A stretch of DNA of 60,494 nt from Hemiscyllium ocellatum. Lineage: Eukaryota. The position numbers and the translations under genes were made by a program. Below, one piece after another: positions 471 to 56,079 of this stretch (position 1 is the first letter of the stretch; each line of letters begins with the position of its first letter). The notes below the pieces were generated by a model, which worked only from the letters and a program-made list of their open reading frames with translations, had not been told where the DNA came from and did no database searches. The stretch lies in the NCBI RefSeq assembly GCF_020745735.1, contig NC_083409.1, positions 17,236,619 through 17,297,112 on the forward strand, in the 5' to 3' direction.

Positions 471-797
471 CAAATACAAATCAAATGCTGTTTGGAATAT
501 TTACTTTGCAAACCCTGTGGTATTGTTATTCTGGGTAGTAAGATCCTGCTGGTCAAATTGATCAATAAAATGCGAACTGAACTGCTTGGCTCGGGATCTT
601 GCTGTGCTGAAAGAATGTGTTGGTGTTCAGGGGAATTCCCATCAGATTATTGTGTTCCCCATTACCCCCTCTATTCTCCCCTTCCTGCTCCATACCTGGG
701 GGTGGGGTGGAGCTTTTCACTTCGTACACCTATCCCTGAGGACTCAGCTCTGGCCATTCCCAAAGCACACAGACACAGAGACTGAATCTTCTTCATC

Positions 798-803
798 TTT
801 ATT
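798..803 (-). terminator. PolyA signal AATAAA of cluster 1
   Basis: tttatt at 798-803, ~530 nt past the C stop and followed by a GT-rich tract. Conserved in the other arm (55893-55898). Confidence 0.75.
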
Positions 804-1330
804 CCCTTTTCCAGATTGACATTGACAGAAAACAGTCAGCAATTAACAGCCCAGACAGAGGAAGCTGCTCAAATTCACAGCCACATTGGAGCTTGAGGAA
901 AACACTTGTGGGGATTTTCTCAATAACATGAGAATCCTGTCCCTTTAAACAGTGACAAAACCTTAAATTGGAACTGGCGGCTGAGCAGAAAGGAGGTCTG
1001 TTTTACTGAAACAGAGACGTTTGAGGTTCACATTGTTTTTGCACAGCTAACAGTCTTTAGCATCTTCGAGAGGTTATACTTGACATCGCAAGTTAACACT
1101 GTCCCCATCAAACACATCCAGGTCAGGGAAGGCATGGGGCTAGATAAAGAGTAAAGTTTTCTCTACACTATCCCAATGACCTGCCTTAACCCCTGAAGCT
1201 CAGAAGTGTCTCTGAGCCAGTCCTCAGAAGGAAGAGAGTTGAAATTCAGTGCTGACAATGACCTTTGACCTGCCAGCTCAGCCCTGTTCTATTTAAAGTT
1301 GTGTCTCCTCTGTGGACTGTCTCCAACACT

Positions 1331-1659
1331 CTACACACATTCTGATCTCCTGATGCTCTTGCTGAGGGGAGAGGGGAGGGTCACATGGGTGAGGGCACAG
1401 GAGAAGCGAGCGTTGGACTCCCAGTCAGGCCCAGAGAGGGTCAGCAGGCTGCTGACACTGTAGGTGCTGTCCGAAGCTCGCAGGTAGTTGCTGGTCTGAA
1501 CCCCGTCCGAAATGACTGCACCGTCCTTCTTCCACTGCACCTCCAGCTCATCGGGATAGAAGTGATTGGCAAGGCACACCAGGGTGGCAGTGCCCTTGGC
1601 ATTAATCTGCTCCAGGGAGGGGGGCAGCAGGGTCAGCTTGGGCTGAGAGTTGTCACGGA
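1331..1659 (-). CDS. IGKC: Ig kappa-type (type III/NS4-like) light chain constant exon, cluster 1, intact
   Basis: Acceptor ...ttgtctttcAG at 1660-1661, then phase-1 exon (x)TC-RDNSQPKLTLLPPSLEQINAKGTATLVCLANHFYPDELEVQWKKDG...RFSCALTH...RSECV*. Both intradomain Cys, the Trp and the terminal interchain Cys are present. Stop at 1331-1333. Confidence 0.97.
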
Positions 1660-2789
1660 CTGAAAGACAAAAGAAACAATTTTAATCCCTGCCTTTTGAA
1701 GGGAATTCAACACTCACAATATTCACTGGCAATACAATCTTTTTGAACATTCTTAGTCAATACAGAATAAACCCAACAAATGAACAGACACTGTTCAAAT
1801 TGCTTCTTGCGATCTGAGTGTCACTGGCAGGGCCAGCATTCATTACCGTCCCTAGGTGTCCCTGAGAAGGTGATGGTGAAGCAGCAGAGAGAGAAGGGAC
1901 AGTTTTGGACCATTGGTTATGGAATGAATGTGGGCAGCTGGAAGGGCTATCGATGGGGAAGCACTTTAGTGACAGCGATCAGAACTCAGTGAGATTGAGA
2001 GGAGGGATGGAAATGGAGAACCATGGAGCAAGTGTAAAAGTTTTCATTTTACTAAACTGTGTGGTGCTTTGGTAAAAGTGGATCGGAACCAATGGCATGA
2101 TGGGAAATCAGTGTCAGGGCAGTGGGAGCCCTCGAAGGATGAGACAGACTGTTCCGAATCTGTTCCCACAATGAGTAAGGGTGGGACTCCCACATCTAGA
2201 CCAAAGAAACAAGAGGATTGGGGTTCACGTACTGACATGGATTGGGAACTGGTTGGCAGGCAGCACAGAAAGAATGAGTCTTTTTCTGAATGGCAGGTAA
2301 TAACAACTTAGGGTGCCACAGGGTCAGTCCTTGGTACCCAGTTATTCATAATAAATAACAATAGAGTCATAGGGGCCCAAAAGACCCATCATCCCATTGT
2401 GTCCATACTGGTCAAAAAACAACAACCCAATAATTGTCATCCATTTTTCCAGCAAAAGGGAATTAGATGCAATGTGTATTTAAGAAGGAATTAGATACAG
2501 TTCTTAGGATTAAAGGGATCAAAGAATGTGGAGAGAAAGTAGGAACAGGGGACTGTGTTGGATGAACAGCCATGATCATATTGAAGGGTGGAGCAGGCTT
2601 CAAGGGCTGAATGGCCTACTGCTGCTCCTGTGTTTGATGTTTCTATCTGTTTCTCAGATAATGAAGGAATGTCTCTCATCATTTTGAAGCTGGAAGTCAG
2701 ATGTGTGTGGAGGTGGAAGATGTGGCCATGGTGATTAATGCAGGTCAGTAAGGTGGTTCAGAAGACACATGGGAGAAACTGTTTTACTT

Positions 2790-3125
2790 TTTCCCTTGAT
2801 GGAATGAGGGCATTGCTGGATCGGCAGCATTTATTGCCCATCCCTAATCACCCAGAGGGCAGTTTAGAGTCACCCACATTGCTGTGGGTCTGGGGTCACA
2901 TGGTAAGGATGGCAGTTTTCTTCCCTAAAGGACATAAGGGAATCAGATGCTTTTCCTGACAATCAATGATGGTTTCATGGTCATCATTAGTCTCTTAATT
3001 CCAGATTTTGTTTTGATTGAATTTGAATGCCACCATCTGCTGGATTCTAACCCTGGTCCCCAGAACATTACCTGGATCTCTGGATTAACAGCTCAGCAAT
3101 AACACCATTAGACCATCACCTCCCT
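2790..3125 (+). mobile_element. SINE-like repeat (a second, partial copy starts at ~1805)
   Basis: Same sequence mirrored at ~54610-54920. Related text also at ~16835. Confidence 0.6.
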
Positions 3126-3179
3126 TATCTCATTTTTGGTTGACTGTGAAAGCAAGAAGTTTGTTTATTCTGGAACTGT

Positions 3180-3660
3180 ATAAAACCCCAGTTAGAGCAC
3201 AGTGAGAGAACTGTGTACGGTTCTGGTCACCACGTTACAGGAAGGATGTGATTCCATTAGAGATGGGGACAGAGGAGGAGTTTGTCTGGAATGGGGACTT
3301 TGAGCTTTGCGGAATGATTGGATTGGCTGGGACTGTTTTCTTTGGAACACAGGAGGCTGAGGGGAGATTTGGTGGTGGTGTGTAAAATGATGAGGGGCCT
3401 GGACAGAGTAGGTAGGAAGGACTGATTTCCACCAACACAGAGGACAATAACCCTGGGGAGAGATTGAAATCAGTTGGGGCAGGATTAGAGAGGAGTTGAG
3501 GGTATTTGTTTTCACCCAGAGCTTGGTGGGATGTGGGACTCACTGTCTGAAAGGGTGGGAGAGGCAGAAACCCTCATCAAATTGAAAAAACACTTAGATG
3601 TTCACTTGAAACAGCAAAACTTCCAGAGCTATGGAGCAAGAGCTGGAAAGTGGGATGGAG
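3180..3660 (+). mobile_element. CR1-like LINE 3' fragment
   Basis: Decayed RT C-terminus (LEYCVQFWSP-like) and 3'UTR shared with other copies. Confidence 0.65.
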
Positions 3661-4189
3661 CGTGATATCTCTTTAACAAACCTCTGATTACCCACAGATC
3701 AGGAGAACTTTATTCAAGAACATTGGAGCAGACTCGGATCCACACACGTCAGGAAAGAATCACGTTGGGGTGTCTGTGTAGAAGATTCCAGATGATATTT
3801 CAAACCTTGCTGCACACTATTGGGCTGAGGTCAAGGGTGAGGCTGCAAAGAGTCTCAGTGTCCTAGAGTCAGACAGGGTCACTGCTCCTAATGACCCCAT
3901 GACTCCTGGAAGGTGAGAGTGCGCAGACAATGGATGAGGATCCTGATCAGGAGACTCCAACCTTCAAGAAAGACTTGCACTTGTGTAGCACCTGTCCCCA
4001 ACTCAGGATGTCCCACTGGATGTTTCCAGCAGACTGTGCACAGCGAGATCCCAAACCCCATGTGATAATTAGCAGAGAAATACATTCTGAGTGATTTTGA
4101 CTGGGGGATAAATATTGACCAGGGACACCAGGGGGAACTGCCTGCTCTTCATCCAATAGTGCCATGGAATGGCATCTTTCACAACTGAA

Positions 4190-4895
4190 AGACTCTCAGT
4201 TATTCCAAAAAATGAAGAATAGTTCCTTGAAGATGAAGTTGCAGGTACATAGGGAAGTGACAAAGTTATTTGGTTTGCTTTCCTTTACTTGTCAGTGCAT
4301 TGGGTATTGGAGTTGGGAGCTGTTGCGGCTGTACAGGACATTGGTTAGGGCACTTTTGGATTACTGTGTGCAATTCAGTTCTCCTTGCTGTAGGAAAAAT
4401 GTTGCGAATCTTAAAATGATTTACAAGGATGTTGCCAAGGTTGGAGGGTTTGCATGAAAAGGAGAGGCTGAATAGGCTGAGGCTGTTTTTCCTGGATCAT
4501 TGCAGGTTGATGGGTGACCGTATAGAGGTTTATAAAATCATGAGCGGCATAGATAAGGTGAATAGAGAAGATTTTTTCTCCAGAGTTGGGGAGTCCAGAA
4601 CTGGAGGGCATAGGCTGAAGGTGACAGGGGAAAGATTTAAAAGGGACCTAAGGGACAACGTTTTCATTCAGAGGGTGTTAAATGTATGGAATGAGCTGCC
4701 AGAGGAGGTGGTGAAGGCTGGTACAATTACAACATTTAAAAGACATGGGTATGTAAATAGGAAGATGTTAGAGGGATATGGGCCAAATGCTGGCAAGTGG
4801 GACTAGATTAATTTCGGATATCTGGTCAGCATGGACGAGTTGGACCGAAGGATCTGATTCTGTGCTGTCCATCTCTCTGACTCTAATTGTATTTC
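4190..4895 (+). mobile_element. CR1-like LINE 3' end
   Basis: ORFs 4164 and 4429 (LYRTLVR..LDYCVQF; RLRLF..GDRIEVYKIM) are typical CR1 ORF2 C-terminus. Confidence 0.85.
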
Positions 4896-5489
4896 AATCC
4901 AGCCCTTAACACATCAGGCTCTCCCAAAGACATTTACAGACAGTTTTGTTTGACAAACAGTCACTGTTGCAATGTCAGTAACGTGGCAGCTGGTTTCTGC
5001 ACAGCAAGATCCCACTAGAAGCAATGAGATCAAAGAGCAATAATGATGTTGGCTCAACGATAACTATTGGCCTGAACTCAACCCAAAGAGAAAGGAATTT
5101 GGTTCAGTTGGATGGAAAATGAGAAAATGGAAGGTAAAGGAGAAGGTAGGATTGCTGGTTAGTGATGGGATTGATTGTTACCAGAAAATAAAAGAAAGGG
5201 ATGGAATTTTTGAATATCAAAGGGATCATAAAAGTGCAGGGAAAATCAACAATAGAACAAACTTAAAGAGTTTGTATCTAAATGCACAAAGCATTCTGAG
5301 TAAGGTTGACAAAGTGATGTCACAAATCCAGGTAAATTGAGTTTCCAAGGAATTTAAACTAGTTAAAGTTGAGGAGGGCTCAGGAAAGGTTATTCAAGTT
5401 TCTAGAAGATGTAAAAGGACAGAGAGTACAGAAAGGATCAGGAATCGAACATAAAGCACAGCAGATAAGAGGACAATGATGGGAAGGAG

Positions 5490-8020
5490 GGCAGTCAATG
5501 CAGGACTGAGGGTGTTGTACTTAAATGCACACAATATACACAATGGGCTGGTAGTGCAGATTGAAACTGGCAGGTACGATGTTGTGGGTATCACAGAGAC
5601 ATGGCTGTAAGGGAATTCGGGCTGGGAACTAAATATTCAAGGATGCATGTCCTATCAAAAGGACGGGCAGATGGGCAGAGGGGGAAGAGTTGTCTTGTTA
5701 GTGAGAAATGAAATTAAATCAATAGCAAGAAGTGATGTAGAGTTAGAAGGTGTAGAATCTGTGTGGGTAGAGCTGAGGAACTGCAATAAATAAAGAATCT
5801 GATGCAAGTTATGTCCAGGTCTCCAAGCAGTAATCAGGGTGTGGGGAAGGAAATCAGTCAGGAGACAGAAAATGTCAGGGCAGACTTCAATGGATCGGTG
5901 GACTGGGTAGTGTATCTCAAGGAAAGGATTTCATGGAATATCTATGAGACGGATTTTGGAGCAGCTTGTGCTTGAGCCATTATGGAACAGGCAGGTCTGG
6001 ATTCAGTGATGTGTATTGAGGCAAACATGATTAGTGAGTTTAAGGTGAAAGTATCCCTGTGGATAAGTGACCATAATACGATAGAATTCCCCCTGTAGTT
6101 TGAGAGGGAGAAGCTGCAATCAGATTGAACAGTATTTCAGTTGAGTAAAGGTAACTCAATGTGGTGGAGAATAGTGGGAAGCCGGAGGATTAGGAAGCCT
6201 TTAAAAACCTGCAGGGGATAACTGAAAAAGCATTAAGGGTGGAGAATGTGAAATGTGGGAGTTATCTAGCCAGTAATATAAAAGAAGATTGCAGGAGTTT
6301 TATCAGGTGTATAAAAAGGAAGAGGGAGTCAAAAATAGACTATGGATCACTGGAAAATGAGGCTAGAGAATGAATAACAGGAAATGAAGGAATAGCAGAG
6401 GAATTGAATAGATACTTTGCATCAGTCTGCATCATGGAAAACACCAGCAGTGTCCCAGTAATTCAAGACTGTCAGGGGTCGGAGCGGAGTGCAGTGGCCA
6501 TCACTAAGGAGGAGGTACTGGGGAAGCTGGAAGGTCTGAATGTGGATAACTCACCCAGACTGGATGAACTACACCAGTGTGTTCTGAAGGAGATCGCTGA
6601 GGAGATTGTGGAGGCATTGGTGATGATCGTTCAGGAATCAATGGAGTCAGGGTGTGGAGGTGAGATGGGGACGGATTTGGTGGGGGCAAGGGACAGGAAA
6701 ATGGCTCACATATCACCCCTGTTTAAGAAGGGAGGGAGGTAGAAGATGGGACATTATCAGCCAGTTAGCCAGGACTCAGTTGTTGGTAAGGTTTTAGACT
6801 TCAATTTAAGGATGAAATTGCAGAGGACTAGGAAGTGCAATGGCTTCATCAAGGAGATATCATGCCTGGCAAATCTGTTAGAATTCTTTGAGGAGGCAAT
6901 GAGCCAGTCAGACAAAGGAGAGTCTGAGGAAGTAATCTATTTGGATTTCCACAAGGCATTTGACATCAGACAAGCGCCCACAGTATTAGGGGCAATGTAG
7001 TGGCATGGATTGAAGACTGGCAGGTTGGCATAAAGCAGAGCGTGAGGAACAATGGCCAATGGTGACTAGTAGAGTTCTGCAGGTGTCAATGTTAGGGCCA
7101 TAACTATTCACGTTATACATGAACAATCTGGATGAAGGAAGTGAAGACATTGTTGCTAAGTTTGCAGGTGACATGAGATAGGTGGAGGGACAGGTAGTGT
7201 TGAGGAAGTGGGAAGGCTGTAAAAGCTCCTGGATAGGCTGGGAGAGTGGGCAAAGAAGTGGCAGATATAATACAATGTGTGACAGTGTGAGGGTATGCAC
7301 TTTGGGAGGAAGAAGAGATGCAAAGACTGTTTGCTAAATAAGGAAAGCCTTTGGAAATCTAAAGCACAAACCACATTCAGGTTTCCCTTCAGTTTAACAG
7401 GCTGGTCCAGTTTGTGCTTGGGTAGGCAAATGAAATGATAGCATTCATTTCAATAGGGCCAGAATACATGAGCAGAGATGTACTGCTGAGGCTGTGTAAG
7501 GCTCTGGTCAGACCACATTTGGAATATTGTGAGCAGATTTGGGACCCATAGTCTAAGAAACAATGTGCTGGTATTGGAGGGGTTTACAAAAATGATCCTG
7601 GGGATGAAGGGCTTGTCATATGAGGCGTGGTTGAGGACTCTGGGTCTGTACTCGACGGAGTTTAGAAGAATGATGAGGGATCTGATTGAAATTTGCAGAA
7701 TACTGATCGGTCTGGATAGAGTGGATGCAGGACAGACTCGGGAACCAAGGCACAGCCTCAGAATGACGGGCCGACCCTTTTGAGCTGAGGTGAGGAGGAA
7801 TTTGTACAGCCAGAAGGTGGCGTAACTGTGGAACTCATTGCTACAGAGGGCAGGGGAGGCCAAGTCACTGAGTGTATTTAAGACAGATATAGATAGGTTC
7901 GTGATTGTGAAGGGGATCGAACGTTCCTGTGGAGTAGGCAGGAGAATGGGGGTGAGAAGCATATCTGCCAAGATCAAATGGCAGAGCAGATTCAATGGGC
8001 TGAATGGCTGATTTCTGCTC
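5490..8020 (+). mobile_element. Decayed CR1-like LINE ORF2 (APE endonuclease + RT); mirror at ~51030-53200
   Basis: VLYLNAH...YDVVGITETW endonuclease start. RT motifs CLANLLEFFEE, YLDFHKAFD, KFAGD. Many stops and frameshifts. Confidence 0.85.
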
Positions 8021-10672
8021 CTATTTCTTAAAGACTTCTGGAGAGTTTCCCCAAAACCCTGGAACACTGAACCCACTGGACTGTGAGCCCTGCTGGAGCT
8101 GTTTGTCATCAGAACTTTGCCAAGAGACAACCAAAGAGTGGAGAGAGTGTGCATCCATGTCGGAATTTCAGTATGCTTCCCAGCTCCTGGAATACCATGA
8201 GTGCAGGAAGTGTAGTCAGTGACAGCAGTTGGAGCTCCGGGTTCGGAGCTTGAGCAGCAGCTGGTGTCAGTGCGGAGCGTCTGTGAGGCTGAGAGCTCCA
8301 TGGAGAGCACGTTTCTCGATGTGGTCACTCTGCAGCTTCAGAGTATGCAGGGAGACAGGGAATGGGGGAGGAGCAGACAGTCCAAAAGGATCAGGCAGCT
8401 AGTACAGGAATCCCCTGAGTGTATCCCACTCTCCAACCAGGATTTAGTTTGGAATCCTGATAAGAATGATGATTCATCTGGGGAGTGCAGCCAGAAGCAA
8501 GTCCATGGCACCATGGGGGGCTCAGCTGTATTGGGGGGCGGGTGTGTGTGGTGGGGGGGGGTGGTATACGGACGACTGGAAGAGTGATCGTGAAAGGAGA
8601 TTCAAGACTGAGGGCATCGATAGGTGTTTCTGCAGCTGCAGATGGGAATCCAGGATGGTGTGTTGTCTCCCTGGTGCCAGGGTCAAGGATGTCACTGAAC
8701 GGCTGCAGAGCACCCTGAGGGGAGAGGGGGAATAGGCAGCAGTCGTGGTCCACATCGGTCCCAGTGACAGAGGGAGAAAAGGGATATAATCCTGCAGTCA
8801 GAATTTAGGGAGCTCAGAAGGGAAATAACATCAGGAACTCAAAAGTAGGAATCTTCAGGTTACACTTGCCCCACGCAAGTGACAAGAGGAGCAGGAGGAT
8901 AACATAAGTGACTGTAGGGCTGGGAAGAGGATCCAGGAGGGAGGATTTTAGATTCTTGTGACATTGGGACTGGGTCTGGGGGAGATGGGACCTGGATAGA
9001 CCAGACAGCGTCGCTCCTGAACAGAACTGGCACTGAGCTCCTTTGAGGTGATCTACTCGTGCTGTTGGAGAGGGTTTAAACTAACTTGGCAGGGCTGTGG
9101 GAGCCAGGAGGGAATATCAGAGAGGAACACCAAGGTCCACAGAATCATCAGTGCAGTCAACAAGTCACCAACCAGTGGGAAGGATTTAGAGGAATACATT
9201 TGCAAGGAATTTACACAGACCTGCAAATATAATAGTCATTATAAATGGCGGGGGGGGGGTGGGAATGTCTTTAATGTCTGAATATAGACTGGGATAGTAG
9301 CAGTGTGAAGGACAGAGAGGTGCCAGAGTTGTGAGAGTGTGTTCATGTGAATTTTCTCCAGCCGCAGGTTTCCAGTCCAATGAGAAAGGAGGCTCTGCTA
9401 GATCTGGATCTTGGGAATGAGGAGGCCCAAGTGGATCAAGTGTCAGTGAGAGGACACTTAAGGAAGAGTGATCATTGTATCACAAAGTTGAGGGTGACGG
9501 TAGAAAAGAACAAAGGCCTTTTCAGGGTCAAACATCTTCACTGGGTAAAATGCCAGCTTCTATAGGATATGGATGTATCGGATCTGAATAAAATGGGATC
9601 AAAGGTTGGCAGGGAAATCCTGAAAAGAATAGTAGAGGATGTGGACCAGGTATATTCGAGATACATTTGAAGGAGGGCAAACAATTCCTGAACTTACTCA
9701 AGGGCAAAAGTGGTAGAATTATGGTAAATAAGAAAAGGGCAAAAGAGTAACTAGAGAGAGAATAGGGCCCCATGAAGATGAACAATGTACCTCTGGGTGG
9801 ATCCACAGGAAATGGTTTAGGTCTTAAATGAATATTCCAGGTCAGTATTTATCATGGAGAAAGACATGGAAATTTGGGAACTTGGGAAATAAATAGTAAT
9901 GTCTTGACACAGGTCCACATTACAGAAGAGGATTTCTTAAAGTGCAAGACGGTAGATAAATCTCCAGGACCTGATCAGGTGTATCCCAGGACATTGTGGA
10001 AAGCGAGGAGAGAGATTGCTGGACCGCTTGCTGAGGTATGTTTCTGATTGAAAGCCATGAGTGAGGTTCTGGAGAACAGAGAGGTTGGCTAATGTTAGCC
10101 ATTATTTAAGGAAAAGCCAGGGAACTATAAACCAGTGAGCCTGATGTCATTGCTGGGTAAGTTATTGGAGTGAGTTCTGAGGGACAGGATTTACATGCAT
10201 TTGGACAATCAATGCAGTTTTGTGCATGGTAATCGTGTCTCACTAACGTGATTGAGGTTGTTTGAAGAGAAGATTGATGTAGGCAAAATAGTAGACACTG
10301 TCTGCATGGACTTCAGCAAAGCATTTGACAAGGTTCCACATGATAGACTGATTAGTAAGATTAGGCCGCATGGGATCCAGGGGGAGCTAGCCATTTGGGT
10401 AAAAAAATGACTTCAAGATAGGAGACAGAGAGTGGTGGTAAGGGGTTGCTTTTCAGACTGGAGATCAGATGTCAGCTGTGTGCCACAAGGATTGGTGCTG
10501 GGTCCATGGCTTTTCATCATTTAAATAAATGATTTGGATGTGAATATAGGAATTATGGCGAGTTTGTAAATGATCCCAAAATTGGTGGTACAGTGGATAG
10601 TGAAGAAGCTTATCTGAGAGTACAGTGGGACCTTGATCATTTGGGGAAATGGGCAGAGGTGTGGCAAATGGA

Positions 10673-10884
10673 CAAAAGTGCAGACTGCAGATGCTGGAAA
10701 CCAGAGTTTAGATCAGAGTGGTGCTAGAAAAGCACATCATGTCAGGCAGCATCCGAGGAGCAGAAAAATCGACGTTTCGGCTAGAGGAATCCTGATGAAG
10801 GACTTTTGCCTGAAACGTCGATTTTCCTGCTCCTTGGATGTTGCCTGACCTGCTGTGCTTTTCCAGCACCACTCTGATCTAAAC
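10673..10884. mobile_element. Palindromic Penelope-end mini-element with 14-bp TSD
   Basis: Inverted arms 10706-10779/10811-10884. TSD gtgtggcaaatgga (10659-10672) / gtgtgacaaatgga (10885-10898). Empty site in the other arm at ~48381-48394. Confidence 0.85.
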
Positions 10885-11013
10885 GTGTGACAAATGGAGT
10901 TCAATTTAGATAAATGTGAGATGTTGCATTTTGGAAAGTCAAACCAGGGCAGGACTTGTACTGTTAATGGTGGGGCCCTGTGGGGTGTTGCTCAACAAAG
11001 TGACCTCAGGGTG

Positions 11014-11043
11014 CAGGGGCAGGGGCAGGGGCAGGGGCAGGGG
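11014..11043 (+). repeat. (CAGGGG)5 tandem repeat
   Basis: Five exact units, absent at the mirror position (~48260). Confidence 0.9.
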
Positions 11044-11719
11044 CATTATTCCTTGACAGTGGAGTCACAGGGAGACAGGGAGATGAAGAAGATGTTGAGT
11101 ACACTTGCCTTTATTGGTCACTGCACTAAGTATCAGAGTTGGGACATCATTTGCAGCTGTACAGGAAATTTGGGAATAATGTGAACAATTCTGATCATCC
11201 TGTGATAGGAAGGATGCTGTTAAACTTAAAATTCTGCAGAAAAGATTGACATGGATGTTGCCTGGAACTGGAGGGTTTGAGCTGTTGGAAGAGGCTCAAT
11301 AGACGGGTTATTTTTCCTGCAGGATCGGAGACTGAGAGGTGGCCTTATAGATGTTTATAAAATCATGACGGGCATGGACAGGGTGTACATCCCAGGTCTT
11401 TGCCTTGGGAAAGGGAAACCAAAACTAGAGGGTGTAGGTTTAAGATGAGAGGCAAAAGATCCAAAAGGGACCTGAGGGGTAACTTGTCACACAGAGGGTG
11501 GTGCGTGTCCGGATCGTGCTGTCAGAGAAAGTGCTGGAGACGGATAGAATTACAGCATTTAAAAGATGTTTGGATGGGTCCATGAATAGGAAGGGTTTAG
11601 AGGGATGTGGGCTAAATGCTGGCAAATGGGATGAGGTCAGTTTTGGATATCTAGTTAGCATGGAGAAGTTAGACTGAAAGATCTGTTTCCACGCTGTATG
11701 ACTCCGTGACCATTAGAGG

Positions 11720-12545
11720 CTGGAAAAGCTGAGATCTTTTACCCTGAAGTGCCGGAGGCTGAGGAGTGACCTTATAGGGGTTTATAAAATCATGAGGGAC
11801 ATAAATAATGTGAATAATGCAGGAAGGAGGTGAATGTTTTGTGGAGCTGGCAAACATATGCACAAAGATCATTCCAGGGATGAGGAATATCAGTTATAAA
11901 GATAGATTGGAGAATCTGGGACTGTCTTCTTTGGAGAAAGTTACAGATCACACAACATCAGGTTATAGTCCAACAGGTTAATGTGGAAGCACTAGCTTTT
12001 GGAGCGCCGCTGACAACCATTTGATGAAGGAGGGGCGCTCCGAAAGCTAGTGCTTCCGAATAAACCCCCTGTTGGACTATAACCTGGTGTTGTGTGATTT
12101 TTAACTATGTCCACCCCAGTCCAACACCGGCACCTTCAAGTCTTTGGAGAAGGCAGCGAGGAGAATTGTTCCAGAAATTCAAAATCAGGAGGGGCCTGGA
12201 ACAGAGTAAATAGGGAGAAAATGATTCCACTTGTGAAAGGATTGAGACCGAGAGGCCACAGATTGAAAGTAATTGGACTAGAAAGAAAAGTGAGATGAGG
12301 GAAAACATTTTCAGCCAGTGAGTGGTTAAGGTGTGGAATGCACTGCCTGAGAGTGTGGTGGAGGCAGCTTCAATTGAAACATTCCGAAGGGAATGAGACT
12401 GTTATCTGAAAAGGAACAATGTGCAGGGTGACAGGGAGAAGGCAGGAGAATGACACTCAGTGAATTGCTCATTCAGAGAGCTAGTCCAAACAGGATGGAC
12501 GGAATGGTCTCTTGTGCACTGTAAAAGTTCTGTGATTGTGTGATT
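11720..12545 (+). mobile_element. CR1/L2-like 3' fragments ending in a (gtgatt)n-like tail; mirror at ~46950-47560
   Basis: RT C-terminal text and tail ctgtgattgtgtgatt. Confidence 0.7.
11939..12140. mobile_element. Palindromic Penelope-end mini-element (family B) with 11-bp TSD
   Basis: Inverted arms around 12005-12030. TSD tctttggagaa at 11928-11938 and 12141-12151. Empty site at 47345-47355. Confidence 0.85.
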
Positions 12546-12990
12546 GAGCAGAGTTAAAGCTGGGGGAGGTGGGAGCTCGGTGTCTCACTGTGCTGCTGCT
12601 GCTGCTGCTGCTGCTGCTGAGGTCAGTGAGATCAGAGACTGGGACAGGGAGCCAGAGCTCACATCAAACTCTGCCCCGTGTCCGTCACACTGAGACTGGC
12701 AGGAGGCTACTCACTGATTTCACTCCATGCTGCAGGAATGGGACCACAGGCTGCAAATGGACAGAGCTCCTCTACACAGTGAGTAAAACTTACTGACTTA
12801 TATCTTGCGTTTTTTAAAGAGGGCATGAAAGTAAAGAAATACAGCTGGACACCCTGTTAGACACAGTGCTCCTCAATCAACCATTTCATTCTCTGCAGCT
12901 TTCCACTAACACCTTCAACAAATCAGCAACTGTATTTTAGAAAGTGTGTTTCAGTATTGAAAGGGTTAATAACAGAGGATTGAGGTTTAC
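12546..12990. other. Non-repeat island A in the J-proximal intron with a (CTG)9 tract; mirror at ~46505-46950 with (CAG)11
   Basis: Begins where a LINE tail ends. Almost identical between arms by eye and not similar to the LINE/SINE families elsewhere in the window. Confidence 0.7.
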
Positions 12991-12994
12991 TTAC

Positions 12995-13029
12995 TCAGTC
13001 TGAGCTTGGTTCCTTTACCGAACGTAAGC
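12995..13029 (-). CDS. IGKJ: Ig kappa J segment, cluster 1 (LTFGKGTKLRL)
   Basis: FGxG motif: G CTT ACG TTC GGT AAA GGA ACC AAG CTC AGA CTG A, followed by the canonical donor GTAAGT. Confidence 0.95.
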
Positions 13030-13067
13030 CACAGTGAGAGCTCCAGTGCAGAGGCTGTACAAAAACC
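13030..13067 (-). promoter_or_regulatory. J1 recombination signal (23-type, 22-bp spacer)
   Basis: Plus strand CACAGTG (13030-13036), 22 nt, ACAAAAACC (13059-13067). Consensus heptamer and nonamer. Confidence 0.93.
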
Positions 13068-13501
13068 TCAGCTCTCTGCTTCCCTCTTATCACTGTCAAC
13101 CTCTCTCTGTCTCTGTGTGTCTATCGCTCACTCTCACCCTCTCCCTGCCCCTCTTTGTCTCTCCCTCCTTCATGTGTCTTTCTCTCTCTGTCTCTCTGGG
13201 TTGTTTCCAGCTGGGCTCGGGAGGATGGTGAAATTTATTTTTCGATGTTAAATCTTGAGGCAGCTCTTCACATGTGGCCATGTCGTGTAAGAGGGAAACT
13301 TGAGGCCTTCAGTGAGCGTTGAGACACCACAGGGACGGGAGTGTGCCGTGGACAGTGGAAATCCCAGTTTGGGGTAATTTGATCAGTTTCATTCAGATCT
13401 AACTGGATATATCACTTCAGGCGGTGAGACTGTGTGTTCATTATTATACATTTTATGTAACTGCGATGTGTCAGTCCAGGAGGTGGTGTTGTGCGTGTTG
13501 A

Positions 13502-13529
13502 GGTTTTTGTACAGCTCTGTGTCACTGTG
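13502..13529 (-). promoter_or_regulatory. V1 12-RSS
   Basis: Minus strand CACAGTG-acacagagctgt(12)-ACAAAAACC, perfect consensus. V12/J23 is the kappa-type arrangement. Confidence 0.96.
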
Positions 13530-13828
13530 TCGAGGGTAGCTGTAAGCTTGCTGACAGTAATAGTCAGCGACATCCTCATTCTGAACGTTGCTGATTGTCA
13601 GGGTGAAACTGGTCCCTGATCCACTGCCGGTGAATCGATCGGAGACTCCTGTGAATCGAGTTGTTGCAGCATAGATCAGGAGAGAGGGTTTCTGACCTTC
13701 TCGCTGCTGGTACCAAGCAAGGGAGCTGCTAATGCTTTGACTGGCCTTACAGGTGATGGTTGCGGTCTGGCCCAGTCCCACTGACAGCACCGGGGGAGAC
13801 TGGGTCATGGTGATGTCCCCACTGATAC
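13530..13828 (-). CDS. IGKV: Ig kappa V exon, cluster 1, unrearranged and open
   Basis: Acceptor ctcAG then GT ATC AGT GGG + [49 protein letters not shown]...[16 protein letters not shown], ending at the heptamer. Conserved Cys, Trp and YYC. Confidence 0.97.
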
Positions 13829-14014
13829 CTGAGGGATCAGAGAGAAACACAGTGAAGTCAGAACTGTCACAGAAAGAGCCGGTCAAATGAGAGATTGTTG
13901 GAGACACTGAGCATTCCTCTAGTTTCAGCATTTTCCCTTCAATCACAAGTCAGTGGAATTGGAGTGAGATGGAGAGCAGCGAAAGATTCAAGGTGGAAGG
14001 AGAGAGATTTGTAC

Positions 14015-14063
14015 CTGCGACACAGAATGCCAGGGGCCAAATCAGCTGTATGTGTGAAATCAT
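14015..14063 (-). CDS. IGKV: Leader exon of V1 (MISHIQLIWPLAFCVA-G)
   Basis: ATG at 14063-14061, 49-nt exon, donor G|GTAC, 186-nt intron to the V exon with phase matched. Confidence 0.92.
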
Positions 14064-14123
14064 GGTGTGTGCTCCTGTCCCTGTGCCTGGTTCCTGATAA
14101 ACTCTCCCTTCACTGGGCTCTGC

Positions 14124-14220
14124 TTTATAAAGCTGCAGCCTGTGAGAGTCTGACTGGGTGTTCCTCAGTATGTAAATGGCATCAGGCAGAGAGAGCCACG
14201 TCAGCCCCTCACACTTCCTC
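14124..14220 (-). promoter_or_regulatory. V1 promoter: TATAAA (14124-14129), octamer variant ATTTACAT (14170-14177), TGACGTGG (14196-14203), GAGGAAGTG Ets/PU box (14212-14220)
   Basis: Motifs read directly upstream of the leader ATG. TATA plus octamer is the typical IgL promoter layout. The block is conserved in cluster 2. Confidence 0.75.
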
Positions 14221-14289
14221 TTCTCTCTCTCTCTCTCTGTCTCAGAGTCATTGATGTGAACAACATTGAATGAGGCCATTTGGCCCATT

Positions 14290-15050
14290 GTGTCTGTGCT
14301 GGTAAACAGCGATCTGATGACACTAATCCCATCCTCCAGCTCTTGGCCCGTTACCCTGGAGGTTACAGCAACACAAGGGAATATCTAAACACTGCTCCAA
14401 TGTCACGAGAGTTTGTGACTCAACCAGCCTTTCAGACAGTGAGTTCCAGACTCCCACCACCCTCTGGGTGAAAACATTTCTTCTCAACTCTCCTCTCACT
14501 CTCCAATTCTCCAACTCGCCTGGCCATGGACTCACTCGTGTTCAGAACGATGAGAGGGGATCTGATTGATACATATAAAATTGTAACAGGGCTGGGCAGG
14601 GAGGAGGTTTCCCCTGGTTGGGGAGTCTGGAACCAGGGGACACAGGCTCAGGGGGATACAGGGTCGACCATTTAGGACTGAGATGAGGAAACATTTCTTC
14701 ACTCAGAGGGTGGTCAACCTGTGGAATTCTCTACCACTGAAGGCTGTGGAGGACAAGGAACTGAATATATTCAGGAAAACAAGAGAGATAATTGTTTTGC
14801 ATTTTAACAGCTTGAAGAGAATGGGGAGAACGCAGGAATATGGCTTTGAGAGAGAGGATCAGCCATAGATCATAGAATGCCTACAGTGTGGAAACAGGCC
14901 ATTTGGCCCGACAAGCCCACACTGACCCTCGAAGAAATGATGACATTCAAAAATTGATACAGCCATGATCATACTGAATGACAGAACAGACTCAAAGGGC
15001 CGAATGGCCTACTGCTGCTCCAAGTTTCTACGTGTCCACGTCTGTGTTAC
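14290..15050. mobile_element. Two CR1-like 3' fragments in opposite orientation just upstream of the V1 promoter; mirror at ~44590-45190
   Basis: ELRRNVFTQRVVGVWNSL (minus) and MRKHFFTQRVVNLWNSL (plus). Confidence 0.75.
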
Positions 15051-15269
15051 CTTCAATCTCTGTACCAGGTTTTTAAGTCTTTTACTCATGTAAAAAGTGC
15101 CATCCTACCCACCCTATCACTGTCCTGAATAATCTTATCCCTCTCTATCAGGTCCCTGTTAAGCCTTCACTGCTCAAAGCTCACATTCAGGCAGCATCCT
15201 GGGAAATCTCCCCTGTACCCTCTCAGGTACAATCACATTCTTCCCAGAGTGTGGTGACCAGGACCTGTC

Positions 15270-15351
15270 CCTCTCTCTCTCTCTGACTCACATCTGCCAT
15301 TTCTTTCTCTGTACCTCTAGCTCTCTCTCCCACTGTTAATCTCTTTCATGT

Positions 15352-15410
<59 letters not shown>

Positions 15411-16005
15411 CTGTCTCATAGCCACTCTCTCCAACTCACTGATGCATTCTCACTCCATCTTATCATCTGTTTCTCCATCTCTCACTGTCTCTGTTACTCG
15501 CTCCCTCTCTCATTTCAATTAAAAGCCTCCAATTGTTATCTGTCACTGTCTATTCCTACCTCTTTCTCTCTCCTTCCCTCTCTCAATCCCAATTTACAGT
15601 CTCTCTCCCTCTCTCTCTCTGTCATTATAAATCTACCCATACTCATCTCTCTCTCTCACACTCAACTCTACCCTCCCTCTCAACTCTCTTCATGCTTTGT
15701 CTCACACCCATCCTGTCTCTCACTCTCTCTCTCTCTCTCTCTCTCCTTGTCTCTTTCTCTCTCTCCATCCCTCTCAGTCACACTGTCTCACATCTTGTTT
15801 CACTCTCTATCCCTCAGCCTCACCATTTCTACCTCCCTCTAACTCTCTTGGTCCCCTCACATATATTGCACCGTATCAGATGCTCGTCCCTCTATCTCTC
15901 TCTCTCACTTTCTTTCTTTCTTTCTCTCTCTCTCACTCACACACACGCACGCCCACACTCACTATTTTTCCCTCCATCTCTCTCTGTCTCACTGCTCTCT
16001 CTTTC
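15270..16005. repeat. CT-rich low-complexity tract with (CT)n(CA)n microsatellites; mirror (GA/GT-rich) at ~43870-44320
   Basis: Read directly from the sequence. Confidence 0.9.
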
Positions 16006-18480: not shown

Positions 18481-18494
18481 CTTCCAAACCCATG

Positions 18495-31595: not shown

Positions 31596-31670
31596 AGAAG
31601 GAGGCTGTTCAGCCCCTTGTGTCAGTACTAGCTGTTTACTAACCTCACTCACAATGAACATCTCCACTGA

Positions 31671-49374: not shown

Positions 49375-49690
49375 TTAGATTAGATTCTCTACAGTTTGGA
49401 AACAAGCCCTTTGGCCCAACAAGTCCACACTGATCTCCGAAGAGTAACCCACCCAGACCCATTTCCCTCTCAGTAATGCATCAAACACTATGGACAATTT
49501 AGCATGGCCAATTCACCTGACCTGCACACCTCTGGACTGTGGAAGGAAACCAGAGCACCCGGAGGAAAAACACGCAGACACAGGGAGAATGTGCAAACTC
49601 CACACAGACAGTCACCCAAGGCTGGATTCAAACCTGGGACCCTGGTACTATAAGGCTGCAGTGCTAACCACTGAGCCACCATGCTGATCC
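49375..49690 (-). mobile_element. HE1-like SINE
   Basis: Same body and tail as 38049-38360. Confidence 0.85.
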
Positions 49691-50091
49691 CCACCCCTGA
49701 GCCACCACTAAGCCACCAATGCCACCTGAAAATTCACCTAAACACACTTTTGCCAGTCTGGTCACTATATTCAGAAATTAAAGACCCCCCCCCCCCCCCA
49801 TTTATAAGGGCTCTATCATATTTGCAGGTCTCTGTAAATTCCTTGCATTTGTATTCCTCCACATCCTTCCCACTGGGTGGTGTCTTATTGACTGCTGTGA
49901 GGATTCTGTGGTCCTTGGTGTTCCTCTCTGATATTTGCCCCTGGCTCCCACAGCCCTGCCAAGTTAGTTTAAACCCTCTCTAACAGTAGTAAACCACCTC
50001 ACAAAAATCTAAAGCCCTCCCTCATGGATCCTCTTTCCAGCCCAGCAGTCACCTGTGTTCACCTCCTGATTCTATTCTCACTTGTGTGGGG

Positions 50092-50179
50092 TGCTGCAAA
50101 TGTGTTGCTGGGAAAAGCGCAGCAGGTCAGGCAGCATCCAAGGAGCAGGAGAGTCGACGTTTCGGGCCTGAGCCCTTCT
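50092..50179 (-). mobile_element. Short Penelope-end insertion with 14-bp TSD
   Basis: TSD tcacttgtgtgggg (50078-50091) / tcacttgcgtgggg (50180-50193). Empty site in the left arm at 8869-8882. Confidence 0.75.
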
Positions 50180-53100
50180 TCACTTGCGTGGGGCACTGGG
50201 AGTAATCTGGAGATTCCTACCTTTGAGTTCCTGCTACTAATTAGCAGCAGGAACTCAAAAGTAGGAAGCTCCCAGATTACTTAAAAGTCGGAAGCTCCAA
50301 AACCTCTGACTGCAGGACTACATCCCTTTTCTCCCTCTGTCACTGGGACCGATGTGGACCACGAACTGCTGCCTGTTCCCCCTCTCCCCTCAGGGTGGTC
50401 TGCAGCCGCTCAGTGCTATCCTTGACGCTGGCACCAGGGAGACAACACACCATCCTGGATTCCCATCTGCAGCTGCAGAAACACCTATCGACTGCCTTCA
50501 CTCTCCAATCTCCTCTCACTATCACTCTTCCAGTTTTCCTTGTGCCCCCCCTGTACAGCTGGGTCCCCCCGTGGTGCCAGGGACTTCGCCCTGGCTACAC
50601 TCCCCAGATGAACCATCATTCGCATCAGGATTCTGAACTGAATCCTGGTTGGAGAGTAGGATGTCTGGGGATTCCTGTACTAGCTGCCTGGTCCTTTTGG
50701 ACTGTCTGCTGTTCCCCATTCCCTCTCTCCCTGCATACTCTGAAGCTGCGGAGTGGCCACATCTAGAAACGTGCTCTCCACGGAGCTCTCAGCCTCACGG
50801 ACACTCCGCACTGACACCAGCTGCTGCTCAAGCTCCAAAACCGGAGCTCCAACTGCTGTCACTGACCACACTTCCTGTACTCATGGTATTCCAGGAGCTG
50901 GGAAACATTCTGAAGTTCCCACATGGATGCACACTCTCTCCACTCTTGGATAATCTCTTTGCAAAGTTCTGATGACAAACAGCTACTACAGCAGGGCTCA
51001 GAGTCCAGTGTTCAGTGGGTTCAGTGTTCCAGGGTTTTGGAGAAACTCTCCAAAAGACTTTAAGAAATAGGAGCAGAAATCAGCCATTCAGCCCATTGAA
51101 TCTGCTCTGCCATTTGACCTTGGCAGATATGCTTCTCACCCCCATTCGTCTTCCTACTCCACAAGAATGTTCGATCCCCTTCACAATCACGAACCTACCT
51201 ATCTCTGTCTTAAATACACTCAGTGACTTGGCCTCCCTGCCCTCTGTAACAATGAGTTCCACAGATTCACCACCCTCTGGCTGAAGAAATCCCTCCTCAT
51301 CTCAGGTCTAATGGGTCGGCCCTTCATTCTGAGGCTGTGCCTTGGTTAGCGAGTCTCTCCTGTTTTCGGAAACATCTTCTCCACATCCACTCTATCCAGG
51401 CCTATCTGTATTCTGTAAATTTCAATAAGATCCCGCCTCGTCCTTCTAAACTCCATTGAGTACAGACCCAGAGTCCTTAACCATGCCTCATATGACAAGC
51501 CCTCCATCCCCAGGATCATTCTTGTAAACCCCTCCAATGCCAGCACATTGTTTCTTACAATATGGGTCCTAAATCTGCTCACAATATTCCAAATTCAGTC
51601 TGACCAGAGCCTTACACAGCCTTAGCAGTACATCTCTGCCCTTGTATTCTGGCCCTATTGAAATGAATGCTAATATTTCATTTACCTTCCCAAGCACAAA
51701 CCACACCTGCCTGTTCACCTTAAGAAAATCCTGAATGAGGTTTGTGCTTTAGATTTCCAAAGGCTTTCCTCATTTAGAAAATACCTCCACACCCTGACTC
51801 CATTGATTCCTGAAAGATCATCAAAAATGTCTCCACAATCTCCTCAGTGATCTCCTTCAGAACACACTGGTGTAATTCATCTAGTCTGGGTGAGTTATCC
51901 ACACTCAGACATTTCAGCTTCCCCAGTACCTCCTCCTTAATAATGGCCACTGCTCTCACCTCTGTCCCCTGACAGTCTTGAAGGACTGGGACACTGCTGG
52001 TGTTTTCCATTGTGCAGACTGATGTAATGTATGGATTCAATTCCTCTGCTTTTTCTTCATTTCCTATTATTCTTTTTCCAATGTCTATTTCTGCCTCCAT
52101 CTTCCTTTTTATATATCTGATGAAACTCTTGCAATCTTCTTTTATATTACTGGCTCGCTTTCCCCCACATTTCACCTTCGGTACCCTGAATGTGTTTTTT
52201 TCAGTTATCCTCTACAGGTTTTTAAAGACTTCCTAACCCTCTGGCCTCCCACTATTTTCCACCACATTGTGTGCTTTTTCTTTTGCTTTTATGCTGTCCT
52301 TGACCTCCCTCATCAGCCATGGTTACATTGTCCTCCCCTTAGTGTGTTTCTTCTTTTTTGGGATGAATTCCTACTCTGCTTCCTGAATTACCCCCAGAAA
52401 CTCTGCTGTTTGCTGCCACATCATCTTACCTGCTCGGCTCCCCTTCCAATCAACTCTGGCCAGCTCCTTCCTCACGCCTTTGTCGTTCCCTTTACTCAAC
52501 TGAAATACTGTACCATCTGATTACAGCTTCTCCCTCTCAAACTACAGGGGGAATTCTATCGTATTATGGTCACTTATCCAGAAGGATACTTTCACCTTCA
52601 GCTCACTAATCAAGTTTGCCTCATTACACATCACTGAATCCAGAACTGCCTGTTCCAAACCGCAAGCTGTTTCAAAAACCATCTCATAGACATTCCATGA
52701 GAGACGTGCTACCCAATCCACCTCTCCATTTTTTTTAATGGATTTTCTGTCTCCTGATTGATTTCCTTCCCCACACCCTGTTTACTGCTTGGAGACCTGA
52801 ACTTGCATCAGATTCTTTATTTCTTGGGTTCCTCAACACTCCCCACACAGATTGTACACCTTCTGACTGTATCTTTCTTGCTATTGATTTAAAGTCATTT
52901 CTTACTAACAAGGCAACTCCTGTACCTCTGCTCTTCTGCCTGTCTTTTTGATAGATCATGTATCCTTGGATATTTAGTTCCCAGCCCGGATCCCCTTACA
53001 GCCATGTCCCTGTGATACCCACAACATTGTACCTGCCATTTAATTACAACACCCTCAGTCCTGCATTGACTGCCCTCCTTCTCATCATTGTTCCTCTTAT

Positions 53101-55082
53101 CTGATGTGCTTGACATTTGATTCCTGATCCCTTCCATGCTCTCAGTCCTATTACATCTTCCAGAATCTTTGCTAACCTCTCCTGAGCCCTCCTCCACTTT
53201 AACTAGTTTAAGTTACTTGGAAACTCAATTTACCTCGATTTGGGGCATCACTTTGTCTCCCTGACTCGGAATGCTTCGTGCATTTAGACACAAAATCTTT
53301 AAGGTTGATCTATTCTTGACTTTCCCTGCACTTTTATGGCATCTTTGATATTCAAAAATTCCCTCCCTTCCTTTTATTTTTGGTAACAATCAATCCCATC
53401 ACTAACCAGCAATCCTACCTTCTCCTTTACCTTCCATTTTCACATTTTCCATCCAACTGAACCAAATTCCTTTCTCTTTGGGTTGAGTTCAGGACAATAT
53501 TTATCCTTGAACCAAAATCATGAAGAATGCTCTTTGATCTTATTGCTTCCAGTGGGATCTTGCTGTGTAGAAATTGGCTGCCCTTTCCTGAAATTGCAAC
53601 AGTGACTGGTTTTCAAGCAAAGTGTAACTGTCTTTGGGAGAGTCTGAGGTGCTGAGGGCTTGATTGAAACACAATTAGAGTCATAGAGATGTACAGCATG
53701 GAAACAGACTCTTCGATCTGACTCATCCATGTCAACCACAGAGACATAGAGTCATAGTGTCATAGAGATGTACAGCACAGAAATAGATCCTTCTGTGTAA
53801 CTTGTCCATATCGACCAGATAACCTAAATTAATCTAGTCCCATTTGTCAGTATTTGGTCCATATCCTTCTAAACCCTTCCTATTCATATACTCACCCAAA
53901 TGCCTTTTAAATGTTATCATACCAGCCTCCACCACTTCCTCTGGCAGCTCATTCCAAAAATGTACCACTCTTGCAGGAAAACATCATGCCTTAGTTCCCG
54001 TTTAAATCATTCTCCTGATACTTTCCACCTATGCTCTCTAGTTCTGGACTCCTTCACTCTGACCAAAATATCTTCTCTATTCACTTGATCAATGCCCCTC
54101 ATTATGTTAGAAACCTCGATATGGTCATCCCTCAGCCTCCAGCGATCCAGGGAAAATAGCCTCAGCCTATTCAGCCTCTCCCGATTGCTCAAACCCTCCA
54201 ACTTGGCAACATCTTTGGAAATCTTTTCTGAACCAGTTTAAGGTTCCCAACATTTTTCCTACAGCAGGGAGGCCAGAATTCCACACAGTATTCCAAAAGG
54301 GGCCAAACTAATGTCCTGTACAGGTGCATCAGCTCCTAACTCCAATACTCAATGCACTGCCCAATAAAGGGAAGCATGCCAAGTGACTTTGTCGCTCCCC
54401 TACCTACCTGCAACTCCACTTTCAAGGAACTAATCTTTTTTGGGATGAACTGGAGTCTTTCAGAGTGCTTTTCCAAACACCCTGTTCAGAAACAAACTTC
54501 TTGCTTTCACACTCAACTAAAATAAGATAAAAGATGCATTTCATTAAACTAATGACTTCTTGCATTGAGATCTTAATCCAAAAATAAAGATAGAAAAACT
54601 TACTTGATAAGAAAGGTGATGATTTAATGGTACTATCGCTGAGCTGTTCATCCAGAGATCCAGATTAATGTTCTGGGGCCAGGGTAGAATCCTGCCGCAG
54701 CAGATGGTGGAATGTGAATTCAATTTTAAAATCTGCAATTAAGTGTCTAATGATGACCATGAAACAATTATTGATTGTCAGGAAAAAGCCATTTGATTCC
54801 CTGATGCCCTTTAGGGAAGGAAACTGCCATCCTCACCATGTGACTCCAGACCCACAGCAATGTGGTTGACTCTAAACTGCCCTCTGGGTGATGAGGGATG
54901 GGCAATAAATGCTGATCCTATCAGTGACACTCACATCCCAAGAAGCAATTTAAACAATGCTTGTTTTTTATGGGGATTGTTAGGTATTGGCTACAAATGT
55001 TCAAACATTTTATCAATGAATATTCTGAGAGTTGAAATCCCTTCAAATGGCAGGGATTAAAATTGTTTCTCTTGTCTTTCAG

Positions 55083-55366
55083 GCCGTGAGAACTCTCAGC
55101 CCAAGCTGACCCTGCTGCCCCCCCTCCCCGAGCAGGTCAATGCCAAGGGCACTGCCACCCTGGGGAAGAAGGACGGTGCAGTCATTTCGGACGGGGTTCA
55201 GACCAGCAACTACCTGCGAGCTTTGGACAGCACCTACAGTGTCAGCAGCCTGCTGACCCTCCCTGGGTCTGACTGGGAGTCCAATGCTCGCTTCTCCTGT
55301 GCCCTCACTCACGTGACCCTCCCCTCTCCCCTCAGCAAGAGCATCAGGAGATCAGAATGTGTGTAG
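55083..55366 (+). pseudogene. IGKC: Ig kappa C exon, cluster 2, with in-frame 45-bp deletion
   Basis: Acceptor tttcAG at 55081-55082. The exon is 284 nt vs 329 nt in C1. ...GTATL-G-KKDG... replaces ...GTATLVCLANHFYPDELEVQWKKDG. The supplied antisense ORFs (92 vs 77 aa) confirm the 15-codon loss. Confidence 0.95.
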
Positions 55367-55892
55367 AGTGTTGGAGACAGTCCACAGAGGAGACACAACT
55401 TTAAATAGAACAGGGCTGAGCTGGCAGGACAAAGGTCATTGTCAGCACTGAATTTCAACTCTCATCCTGCTCAGGACTGGCTCAGAGACACTTCTGAATT
55501 TCAGGGGTTATGGCAGTTCATTGGGACAGTGTAGATAGGGCTTTACGCTGTGTCAAACCCCATGCTGTCCTTGTTCTGGGAGTGTTTAATGGGGACAGGG
55601 TTGACTTGTGATGCCAAGTAAAATCTCTTGAAGTTGCTGAAGACTGTCAGTTGTACAAAACAATGTGAACCTCAGAAGTCTCTGCTTCAGTAAACCAGAT
55701 CTCCTTCCTGCTCAGCTGCCAGTTCCAATTTAAGGTTTTGTGACTGTTTGAAGGGACAGGATTCTCATGTTATTGAGCAAACCTCCACAAGTGTTTTCCT
55801 CAAGCTCCAATGTGGCTGTGAATTTGAGCAGCTTCCTCTGTCTGGGCTGTTAATTGCTGACTGTTTTCTGTCAATGTCAATCTGGAAAAGGG

Positions 55893-55898
55893 AATAAA
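55893..55898 (+). terminator. PolyA signal AATAAA of cluster 2
   Basis: Mirror of 798-803. Confidence 0.7.
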
Positions 55899-56079
55899 GA
55901 TGAAGAAGATTCAGTCCCTGTGTCTGTCTGCTTTGGAGACTGACCACTCCATTCAGCTGATTGGCTGTATTTCAGCATGGCATTGTCACAATTGGCTAAT
56001 TGGCCTGTCAATCAATGACACATCCGTTGTAGAGGATACTGACAGCCAATCATCAATCACTTTCAAATTATCCCTTTGA

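Follow-up and report, generated by a model that had tools for sequence, protein, structure and literature searches.

The 60,494-nucleotide stretch of epaulette shark (Hemiscyllium ocellatum) DNA analysed here, referred to as the window (C9:17236619-17297112), carries two immunoglobulin kappa clusters. Both hold a leader, a variable (V) exon, recombination signal sequences (RSSs), a joining (J) segment and a constant (C) exon, and they stand in divergent, head-to-head orientation. The window is probably one copy, among at least about 30, of an ancient head-to-head pair that has been amplified as a higher-order module of a very large kappa array.

Self-BLAST of the window shows a minus-strand colinear diagonal between 751-16378 and 55946-43499, in pieces of 71-88.5% identity, which runs from an outermost piece at 751-1847 / 55946-54901 to an innermost core piece at 15891-16378 / 43986-43499. 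An extra inverted block with 80.6% identity is found at 19254-20176 / 39867-38973. Global alignment of 878-16331 with 43546-55818 in gene orientation gives 86.2% identity (9912 of 11500 aligned columns; Kimura two-parameter distance, 0.154). The diagonal far exceeds chance, and the head-to-head clusters with reverse-complement colinear homology described in the original prediction are thus confirmed, together with the contiguous diagonal that it had proposed as a test. It had also considered that the arms might be alleles; an identity of 86% is too low for alleles or for a foldback artefact. The window contains no N.

Taken with the inner block, the arms are 19.4 kb and 17.0 kb long and lie 18.8 kb apart, in good agreement with the predicted arms of ~17-19 kb and interval of ~19 kb. 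The contiguous arm cores alone measure 15.6 kb and 12.4 kb, with 27 kb between them. In the arm alignment, the left 16.4-19.2 kb and the right 40.0-43.5 kb are unalignable (~52% identity). The outer end of the arm homology lies ~45 bp past the poly(A) signal, so that each arm comprises a whole transcription unit with its upstream region. The positions of the long interspersed nuclear element (LINE) fragments should be noted. Degenerate reverse transcriptase fragments occur at matching positions of the two arms with aligned unique DNA on either side of both, so that the LINE junctions are shared, as predicted. The V-to-C span of ~12.7 kb is a consequence of LINE insertions. The major parts of the window are as follows.

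751-16378, minus strand: left arm, contiguous core; intact kappa-type V-J-C cluster, transcribed leftward
9735-11938, plus strand: degenerate LINE fragment in the left J-C intron, RVT_1 remnant; its partner is at 47345-49252 in the right arm
16379-43498, no strand: central region between the arm cores, with the inner inverted block, debris of LINEs and short interspersed nuclear elements (SINEs), and a foldback; 93-100% identical to at least 10 other places
43499-55946, plus strand: right arm, contiguous core; V-J-C cluster, apparently a pseudogene, transcribed rightward

We searched the 3.98-Gb genome with the left C exon; the censuses given here comprise the best 150 of 1040 C candidates and the best 150 of 667 V candidates. 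The 150 best C matches are 92-100% identical to the query, and 149 of them have no stop codon. They lie mostly on C9 at 6.8-24.3 Mb, where the plus strand has 64 and the minus strand 60, and kappa exons are also present on the scaffolds C10-C13, C291, C375, C456, C597, C628, C694, C741, and C1873. Nearly all of the best 150 V exons have open frames, and both orientations are equally common. The array therefore holds at least 150 C-kappa exons and spans 17 Mb. About 50 genes were estimated for the NS4 kappa family of the nurse shark (PMC2193156), and for any one shark isotype the published figure is "as many as 100 loci", whose distribution in the genome is called "not well known" (PMC12227049); the epaulette array is larger than either figure.

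The pair is repeated as a unit within this array. Two places, C9:16834831-16864512 and C10:426192-455853, are colinear with the spacer and the right arm (21830 to at least 51781) at ~100% identity. Two inverted copies near 14.9-15.0 Mb follow at 99%, and there are at least eight further places at 97-98%. Judging from the match coordinates, left-type sequence runs on directly from the paralogous spacers. A right-type match is located 42-49 kb away, in the same geometry, for 17 of 40 matches of the left-type intron (on C9, on C11 twice, on C12, and on C13). The left-type, spacer, and right-type unit is found again on the chromosome of the window and on four other scaffolds, and the module of pair and spacer recurs at least 17-33 times. 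Such recurrence of one multi-gene unit, with its internal geometry and spacer preserved, is what a higher-order repeat module would look like at the sequence level. The region C9:16171466-16263678 has left-type and right-type intron matches with a 49.6-kb period. The period is shorter than the 53-kb C-to-C span, suggesting that some tandem copies begin inside a J-C intron, which would leave truncated clusters that lack a C exon.

The spacing of neighbouring exons points in the same direction. Adjacent C exons in head-to-head orientation are 46-59 kb apart in 29 of 46 pairs (mode, 53 kb; 53.75 kb in the window), whereas only 13 of 95 pairs in the other orientation classes fall within this range (Fisher p = 6e-9). 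Similarly, adjacent head-to-head V exons are 24-39 kb apart in 33 of 41 pairs (mode, 32 kb; 32.1 kb in the window), whereas the spacing of the other neighbour classes ranges from 28 kb to megabases. The V and C frames are open in both partners of many head-to-head pairs. The orientation of neighbouring clusters, which the original prediction had named as a check, thus shows tight head-to-head spacing in both censuses of this genome.

The left and right arms are not sisters. With a 1.5-kb piece of the left J-C intron as the query, at least 40 genomic matches reach 89-100% identity, while the right arm is only 86.8% identical to this piece and lies outside the matches listed. The matching right-arm piece has at least 40 closer matches of its own, with those at ~100% located at C10:454366, C9:16863025, C9:14964502, and C9:14889092. 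When the right C region is used as a query, the left C region of the window is among the weakest listed matches (86%). In a maximum likelihood tree of a 1.05-kb C core from 30 loci and the right arm, the right arm falls in one clade with L015/16/17/19/26/27 (support 0.93), and the left arm in another, first with the near-identical L001/3/4 and then with L005/13/14/18/25/28-30 (support 1.0). Since each arm has closer paralogues elsewhere and the arms fall into separate clades, a private inverted duplication at the window locus is excluded. Origin by inverted duplication, or by inversion in an array, as originally predicted, is still the best explanation for the left-type and right-type pair, but the event was not local.

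These results are consistent with the following history. The left and right types would have split once, either through an inverted duplication or because one of two neighbours was inverted, two routes that cannot be told apart in the present sequences. The whole pair with its spacer was then copied many times by segmental duplication, in both orientations, over ~17 Mb of chromosome. In the unit, the V genes are ~32 kb apart, with the promoters facing inward and the C exons outward, and this geometry is most simply inherited rather than maintained. The uniform head-to-head spacing follows from the copying of the pair as one block. Identity within an arm type is 89-97%, compared with 86-87% between types, suggesting that the types split only somewhat before the oldest module copies were made. 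If a neutral rate of ~1e-9 per site per year is assumed, the arm split would be tens of millions of years old, as an order of magnitude only.

Several points weigh against this interpretation. The colinearity of the modules rests on match coordinates, and the single origin of the pair is deduced from two short segments and a 1-kb tree. The censuses are incomplete, covering the best 150 of the 1040 C candidates and the best 150 of the 667 V candidates, and they may also be inflated by false duplications; a likely case adjoins the window on its left. On the other side, the next 100 kb (C9:17297113-17397112, loci L041-L050) read entirely as N. The join near 21.8 kb in the window copy is provisional, since the public contig pieces at 19000-24999, although of very high word depth, are 94-706 bp long and too short to bear on a long-range join.

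The last point should be considered together with a change of lineage at the same position. Identity to the module at C9:16.83 Mb is 96% to the left of ~21829 and ~100% to the right.

21829-21830, no strand: switch of the closest paralogue, at or near this position, which also matches the end of the neighbouring contig at the 13-N gap

The window thus appears to be a mosaic, in which the spacer and the right arm come from one sublineage and the left 21.8 kb from another. Either recombination between modules or an assembly join could produce such a mosaic. The contig of the window begins 12.2 kb to the left of the window, right after a 13-N gap (C9:17224405-17224417), and its first 34 kb (to window position 21829) repeat the final 34 kb of the contig before it in direct orientation, at 99.67% identity. 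The twin copies cover C9:17190342-17258447, corresponding to window positions -46277 to 21829 (loci L036-L040 and the window). They are probably an unmerged overlap, perhaps of two haplotypes, and the "100% identical" neighbouring cluster at C9:17203904/17216101 may accordingly be a false duplicate. An unplaced scaffold segment, C10:426192-459946, is ~100% identical to window 21830-55946 and shares the stop codon in the right V exon, but does not have a 308-bp insertion found in the window; it may be the other haplotype of the window locus rather than a paralogue.

The window could be chimeric, with a left-type segment (1 to ~21829) joined to the spacer and right arm of another near-identical module. 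The paralogue switch and the exact end of the 34-kb overlap coincide at 21829, as expected for such a join, and the spacer and right arm exist in five ~100% copies, which are hard to assemble. However, at least eight paralogous modules continue across this position from left-type sequence into spacer (99% and 98%), indicating that the arrangement is normal and that the architecture does not depend on the window copy. The window has no N, the private insertion marks its spacer copy as a distinct locus, and recombination between modules explains the switch equally well. We thus consider a chimeric assembly unlikely, and amplification of an ancient pair remains the preferred interpretation.

The left cluster is on the minus strand and consists of the following elements.

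14124-14177, minus strand: promoter, with an octamer-like ATTTACAT from 14177 and TATAAA at 14129-14124, within a 117-bp run identical between the arms
14015-14063, minus strand: leader exon, with ATG at 14063, followed by a GT donor
13530-13828, minus strand: V exon, an open V-set frame with the N-terminal sequence DITMTQSP as in kappa chains
13502-13529, minus strand: V RSS, CACAGTG, a 12-bp spacer, and ACAAAAACC
13030-13067, minus strand: J RSS, GGTTTTTGT, a 22-bp spacer, and CACTGTG
12995-13029, minus strand: J segment, FGKGTKLRL, followed by a GTAAGT donor
1334-1660, minus strand: C exon, an intact C1-set domain ending in SECV, with the stop codon at 1333-1331
798-803, minus strand: poly(A) signal AATAAA, within a 132-bp run identical between the arms

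All frames in this cluster are open and its RSSs and splice sites are intact. The V and C exons match the Pfam families V-set (5e-17) and C1-set (3e-21), respectively. The cluster thus looks functional. In a comparison of the left V with solved structures, which is a weak test, the full light-chain entries among the best matches begin to align at their residue 1-4 (for example 12e8_L, the light chain of the IgG1-kappa 2E8), in keeping with a kappa-type V. The nearest named protein in a database search with the C-exon protein is a partial match from Scyliorhinus torazame. Two entries filed under the bacteria Aeromonas veronii and Salmonella enterica (P0001 and P0002) show 77-82% identity to the kappa C domain of the shark, and their most likely source is contamination of bacterial assemblies with fish or shark DNA.

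The right cluster is on the plus strand.

45426-45474, plus strand: leader exon, with the ATTTACAT promoter motif at 45312
45661-45956, plus strand: putative pseudo-V exon, with an in-frame TGA at 45852-45854 where the left copy has CGA
45957-45984, plus strand: V RSS, mutated heptamer TACAGTG, a 12-bp spacer, and ACAAAAACC
46429-46467, plus strand: J RSS, GGTTTTTAT, a 23-bp spacer, and CACTGTG; sound
46468-46502, plus strand: J segment, coding sequence intact, with the donor GCAAGT in place of GTAAGT
55083-55363, plus strand: putative pseudo-C exon, with a 45-bp in-frame deletion near 55163

The first disulfide Cys and the core Trp are lost with the deletion, and the right C matches C1-set in Pfam at profile positions 36-85 only, that is, in the C-terminal half. 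With the V stop codon, the TACAGTG heptamer, the GC donor, and the C deletion, this cluster is to all appearance a pseudogene. The original prediction of two complete clusters thus stands for the segment content of both arms, but not for the state of the right one. Among the matches listed, the 45-bp deletion is confined to five near-identical copies, and the next-best right-type copies are ~45 bp longer; some right-type C exons elsewhere are intact. The V TGA is common to the window and C10:449731 only, the other three of the five near-identical copies having an open V frame. The right cluster therefore seems to have decayed stepwise, with the C deletion found in five copies and the V stop in two. 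This pattern suggests that the partner clusters of one pair can decay independently.

The positions and orientations of the RSSs are related to whether one arm can rearrange with the other. With its 12-bp spacer, the left V RSS is compatible with the right J RSS, which has a 23-bp spacer, lies 32.9 kb away, and has the opposite orientation. Inversion of 13530-46467, which is geometrically possible, would give a coding joint between the left V and the right J. In the window copy, however, such a joint would be unproductive owing to the GC donor of the right J and the broken right C exon. The CAC of the heptamer must be intact for joining, and joining of the right V to the left J would be hampered by the TACAGTG heptamer. 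The predicted inversional joining is thus permitted by the geometry in one direction only, with a dead product. Inter-cluster inversional joining has been documented in zebrafish only (PMC3014032), and shark rearrangement is reported within clusters (PMC3014032, PMC12227049). In an older comparison, the light-chain segments of sharks were taken to lie all in one orientation, so that inversional joining would be lacking (PMC3014032).

These observations raise the question of whether the head-to-head geometry itself is under selection, either through control elements shared in the 32-kb inter-V region or through inversional joining for secondary rearrangement. The strikingly uniform head-to-head spacing against the broad spacing of the other neighbour classes, the many pairs with open frames in both partners, the compatible RSSs, and the zebrafish precedent (PMC3014032) are all in line with it. 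Block copying of the pair, on the other hand, suffices to explain the uniform spacing. Furthermore, the spacer is LINE and SINE debris in which the Pfam and Rfam searches detected no conserved feature, and it is about as similar between modules (93-100% identity) as the arms are (89-100%). The decay of one partner in the window copy and the reports of rearrangement within shark clusters are also unfavourable, and we regard selection on the geometry as improbable, more so than the assembly join discussed above. A slightly less remote, though still doubtful, idea is that the pairs with ~32 kb between their V genes are the building block of the array and that intact pairs are used for inversional joining, or for joint opening from a shared control region.

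The identity along the arms bears on exchange between them. It varies within 80-94% and is highest at the promoter and leader (94%) and in the J-proximal intron (93%). Of the stretches without a mismatch, the four longest measure 132 bp in the poly(A) region, 117 bp in the promoter, 116 bp at the end of the C exon, and 92 bp in the J-proximal intron. The 132-bp run is located at 779-911 / 55785-55917 and the 117-bp run, which includes ATTTACAT and the TATA box, at 14102-14219 / 45270-45387, although one of the arms is a pseudogene. Since the longest runs fall on functional elements, conservation explains them without conversion. The arm alignment thus gives no sign of arm-to-arm conversion or homogenisation (divergence of about 14-15%, runs of at most 132 bp), and the gene conversion envisaged in the original prediction is not borne out. 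There is likewise no sign in the window sequence that the arms interact. A local inverted duplication of a single cluster, with the arms still exchanging by gene conversion, would fit the real reverse-complement homology, the shared LINE fragment, and the peaks of identity at the promoter/leader and J-proximal intron, but it is scarcely credible given the at least 40 closer relatives of each arm elsewhere, the different clades of the arms, the many recurrences of the pair with the same spacer, and an arm identity of 86% with the four longest identical tracts all on conserved gene elements.

Three further features are located in the spacer.

29686-31600, plus strand: LINE fragment, RVT_1 remnant, found by profile search
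31671-32181, no strand: self-complementary foldback (87%), present in every spacer paralogue listed
38050-38357, no strand: SINE-like insertion of ~308 bp, private to the window copy and missing from every paralogue listed, including that on C10

The foldback was considered as the centre of the large palindrome and rejected, because it is ~2.3 kb away from the symmetry point of the inner block (near 29.6 kb) and is part of every spacer copy. At the gathering thresholds, Rfam has no match anywhere in the window, the foldback included. Pfam gives no match on the ten longest open reading frames, and reverse transcriptase is detected only in shorter stop-to-stop pieces. Relatives of the SINE-like insertion are found at 23083-23360 and 49373-49684 (74-78% alike to the 38050-38357 element). 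In public runs, the word depth at 23000-23400 exceeds that of the flanks 100- to 1000-fold, indicating that the SINE-like family is very abundant; it is perhaps recently active.

Comparison with other systems clarifies what is particular to this pair. In human IGK, the proximal and distal V-kappa copies form a large inverted duplication, so that V genes are found in either orientation and inversional joining takes place. The shark pair resembles it as an inverted segmental duplication of a kappa locus. However, the human V arrays serve one J-C, whereas the shark arms are full V-J-C clusters that are old (86%) and belong to a pair amplified tens of times. Primate sex-chromosome palindromes, whose arms are kept >99.9% identical by arm-to-arm gene conversion, likewise have inverted gene-bearing arms of 10-20 kb or more around a spacer. 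In contrast, the shark arms are 86% identical, each is closer to paralogues elsewhere, and homogenisation is absent.

The closest likeness is with the kappa miniclusters of cartilaginous fish, nurse shark NS4 and horn shark type III. As in these, each arm of the window carries a single V, a single J, and a single C, all oriented alike, with a 12-spacer RSS at V and a 22- or 23-spacer RSS at J (22 in the left arm and 23 in the right). The split leader, the octamer-like promoter, and membership in a multigene family that includes pseudogenes are also shared (PMC2193156). The V-to-C distance of the window clusters, enlarged by the LINE insertions, is different. No description of head-to-head cluster pairing as a repeat unit was found in the shark kappa literature searched. 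Zebrafish light-chain loci similarly have multiple V-J-C clusters per chromosome in opposite polarity with compatible RSSs; hybrid VJ-C transcripts were shown there (PMC3014032), whereas the present result concerns the geometry.

In the window itself, one arm is dead and nothing points to interaction of the arms. On the scale of the array, the kappa genes of this shark are organised largely as stereotyped head-to-head pairs, with both orientations about equally represented, and the unit of array evolution would be the pair rather than the single cluster. The pair geometry also offers a concrete, testable setting for inter-cluster rearrangement in sharks. If intact pairs were used in this manner, inversional joining would provide a route to secondary light-chain rearrangement and editing that is otherwise missing in single-V clusters.

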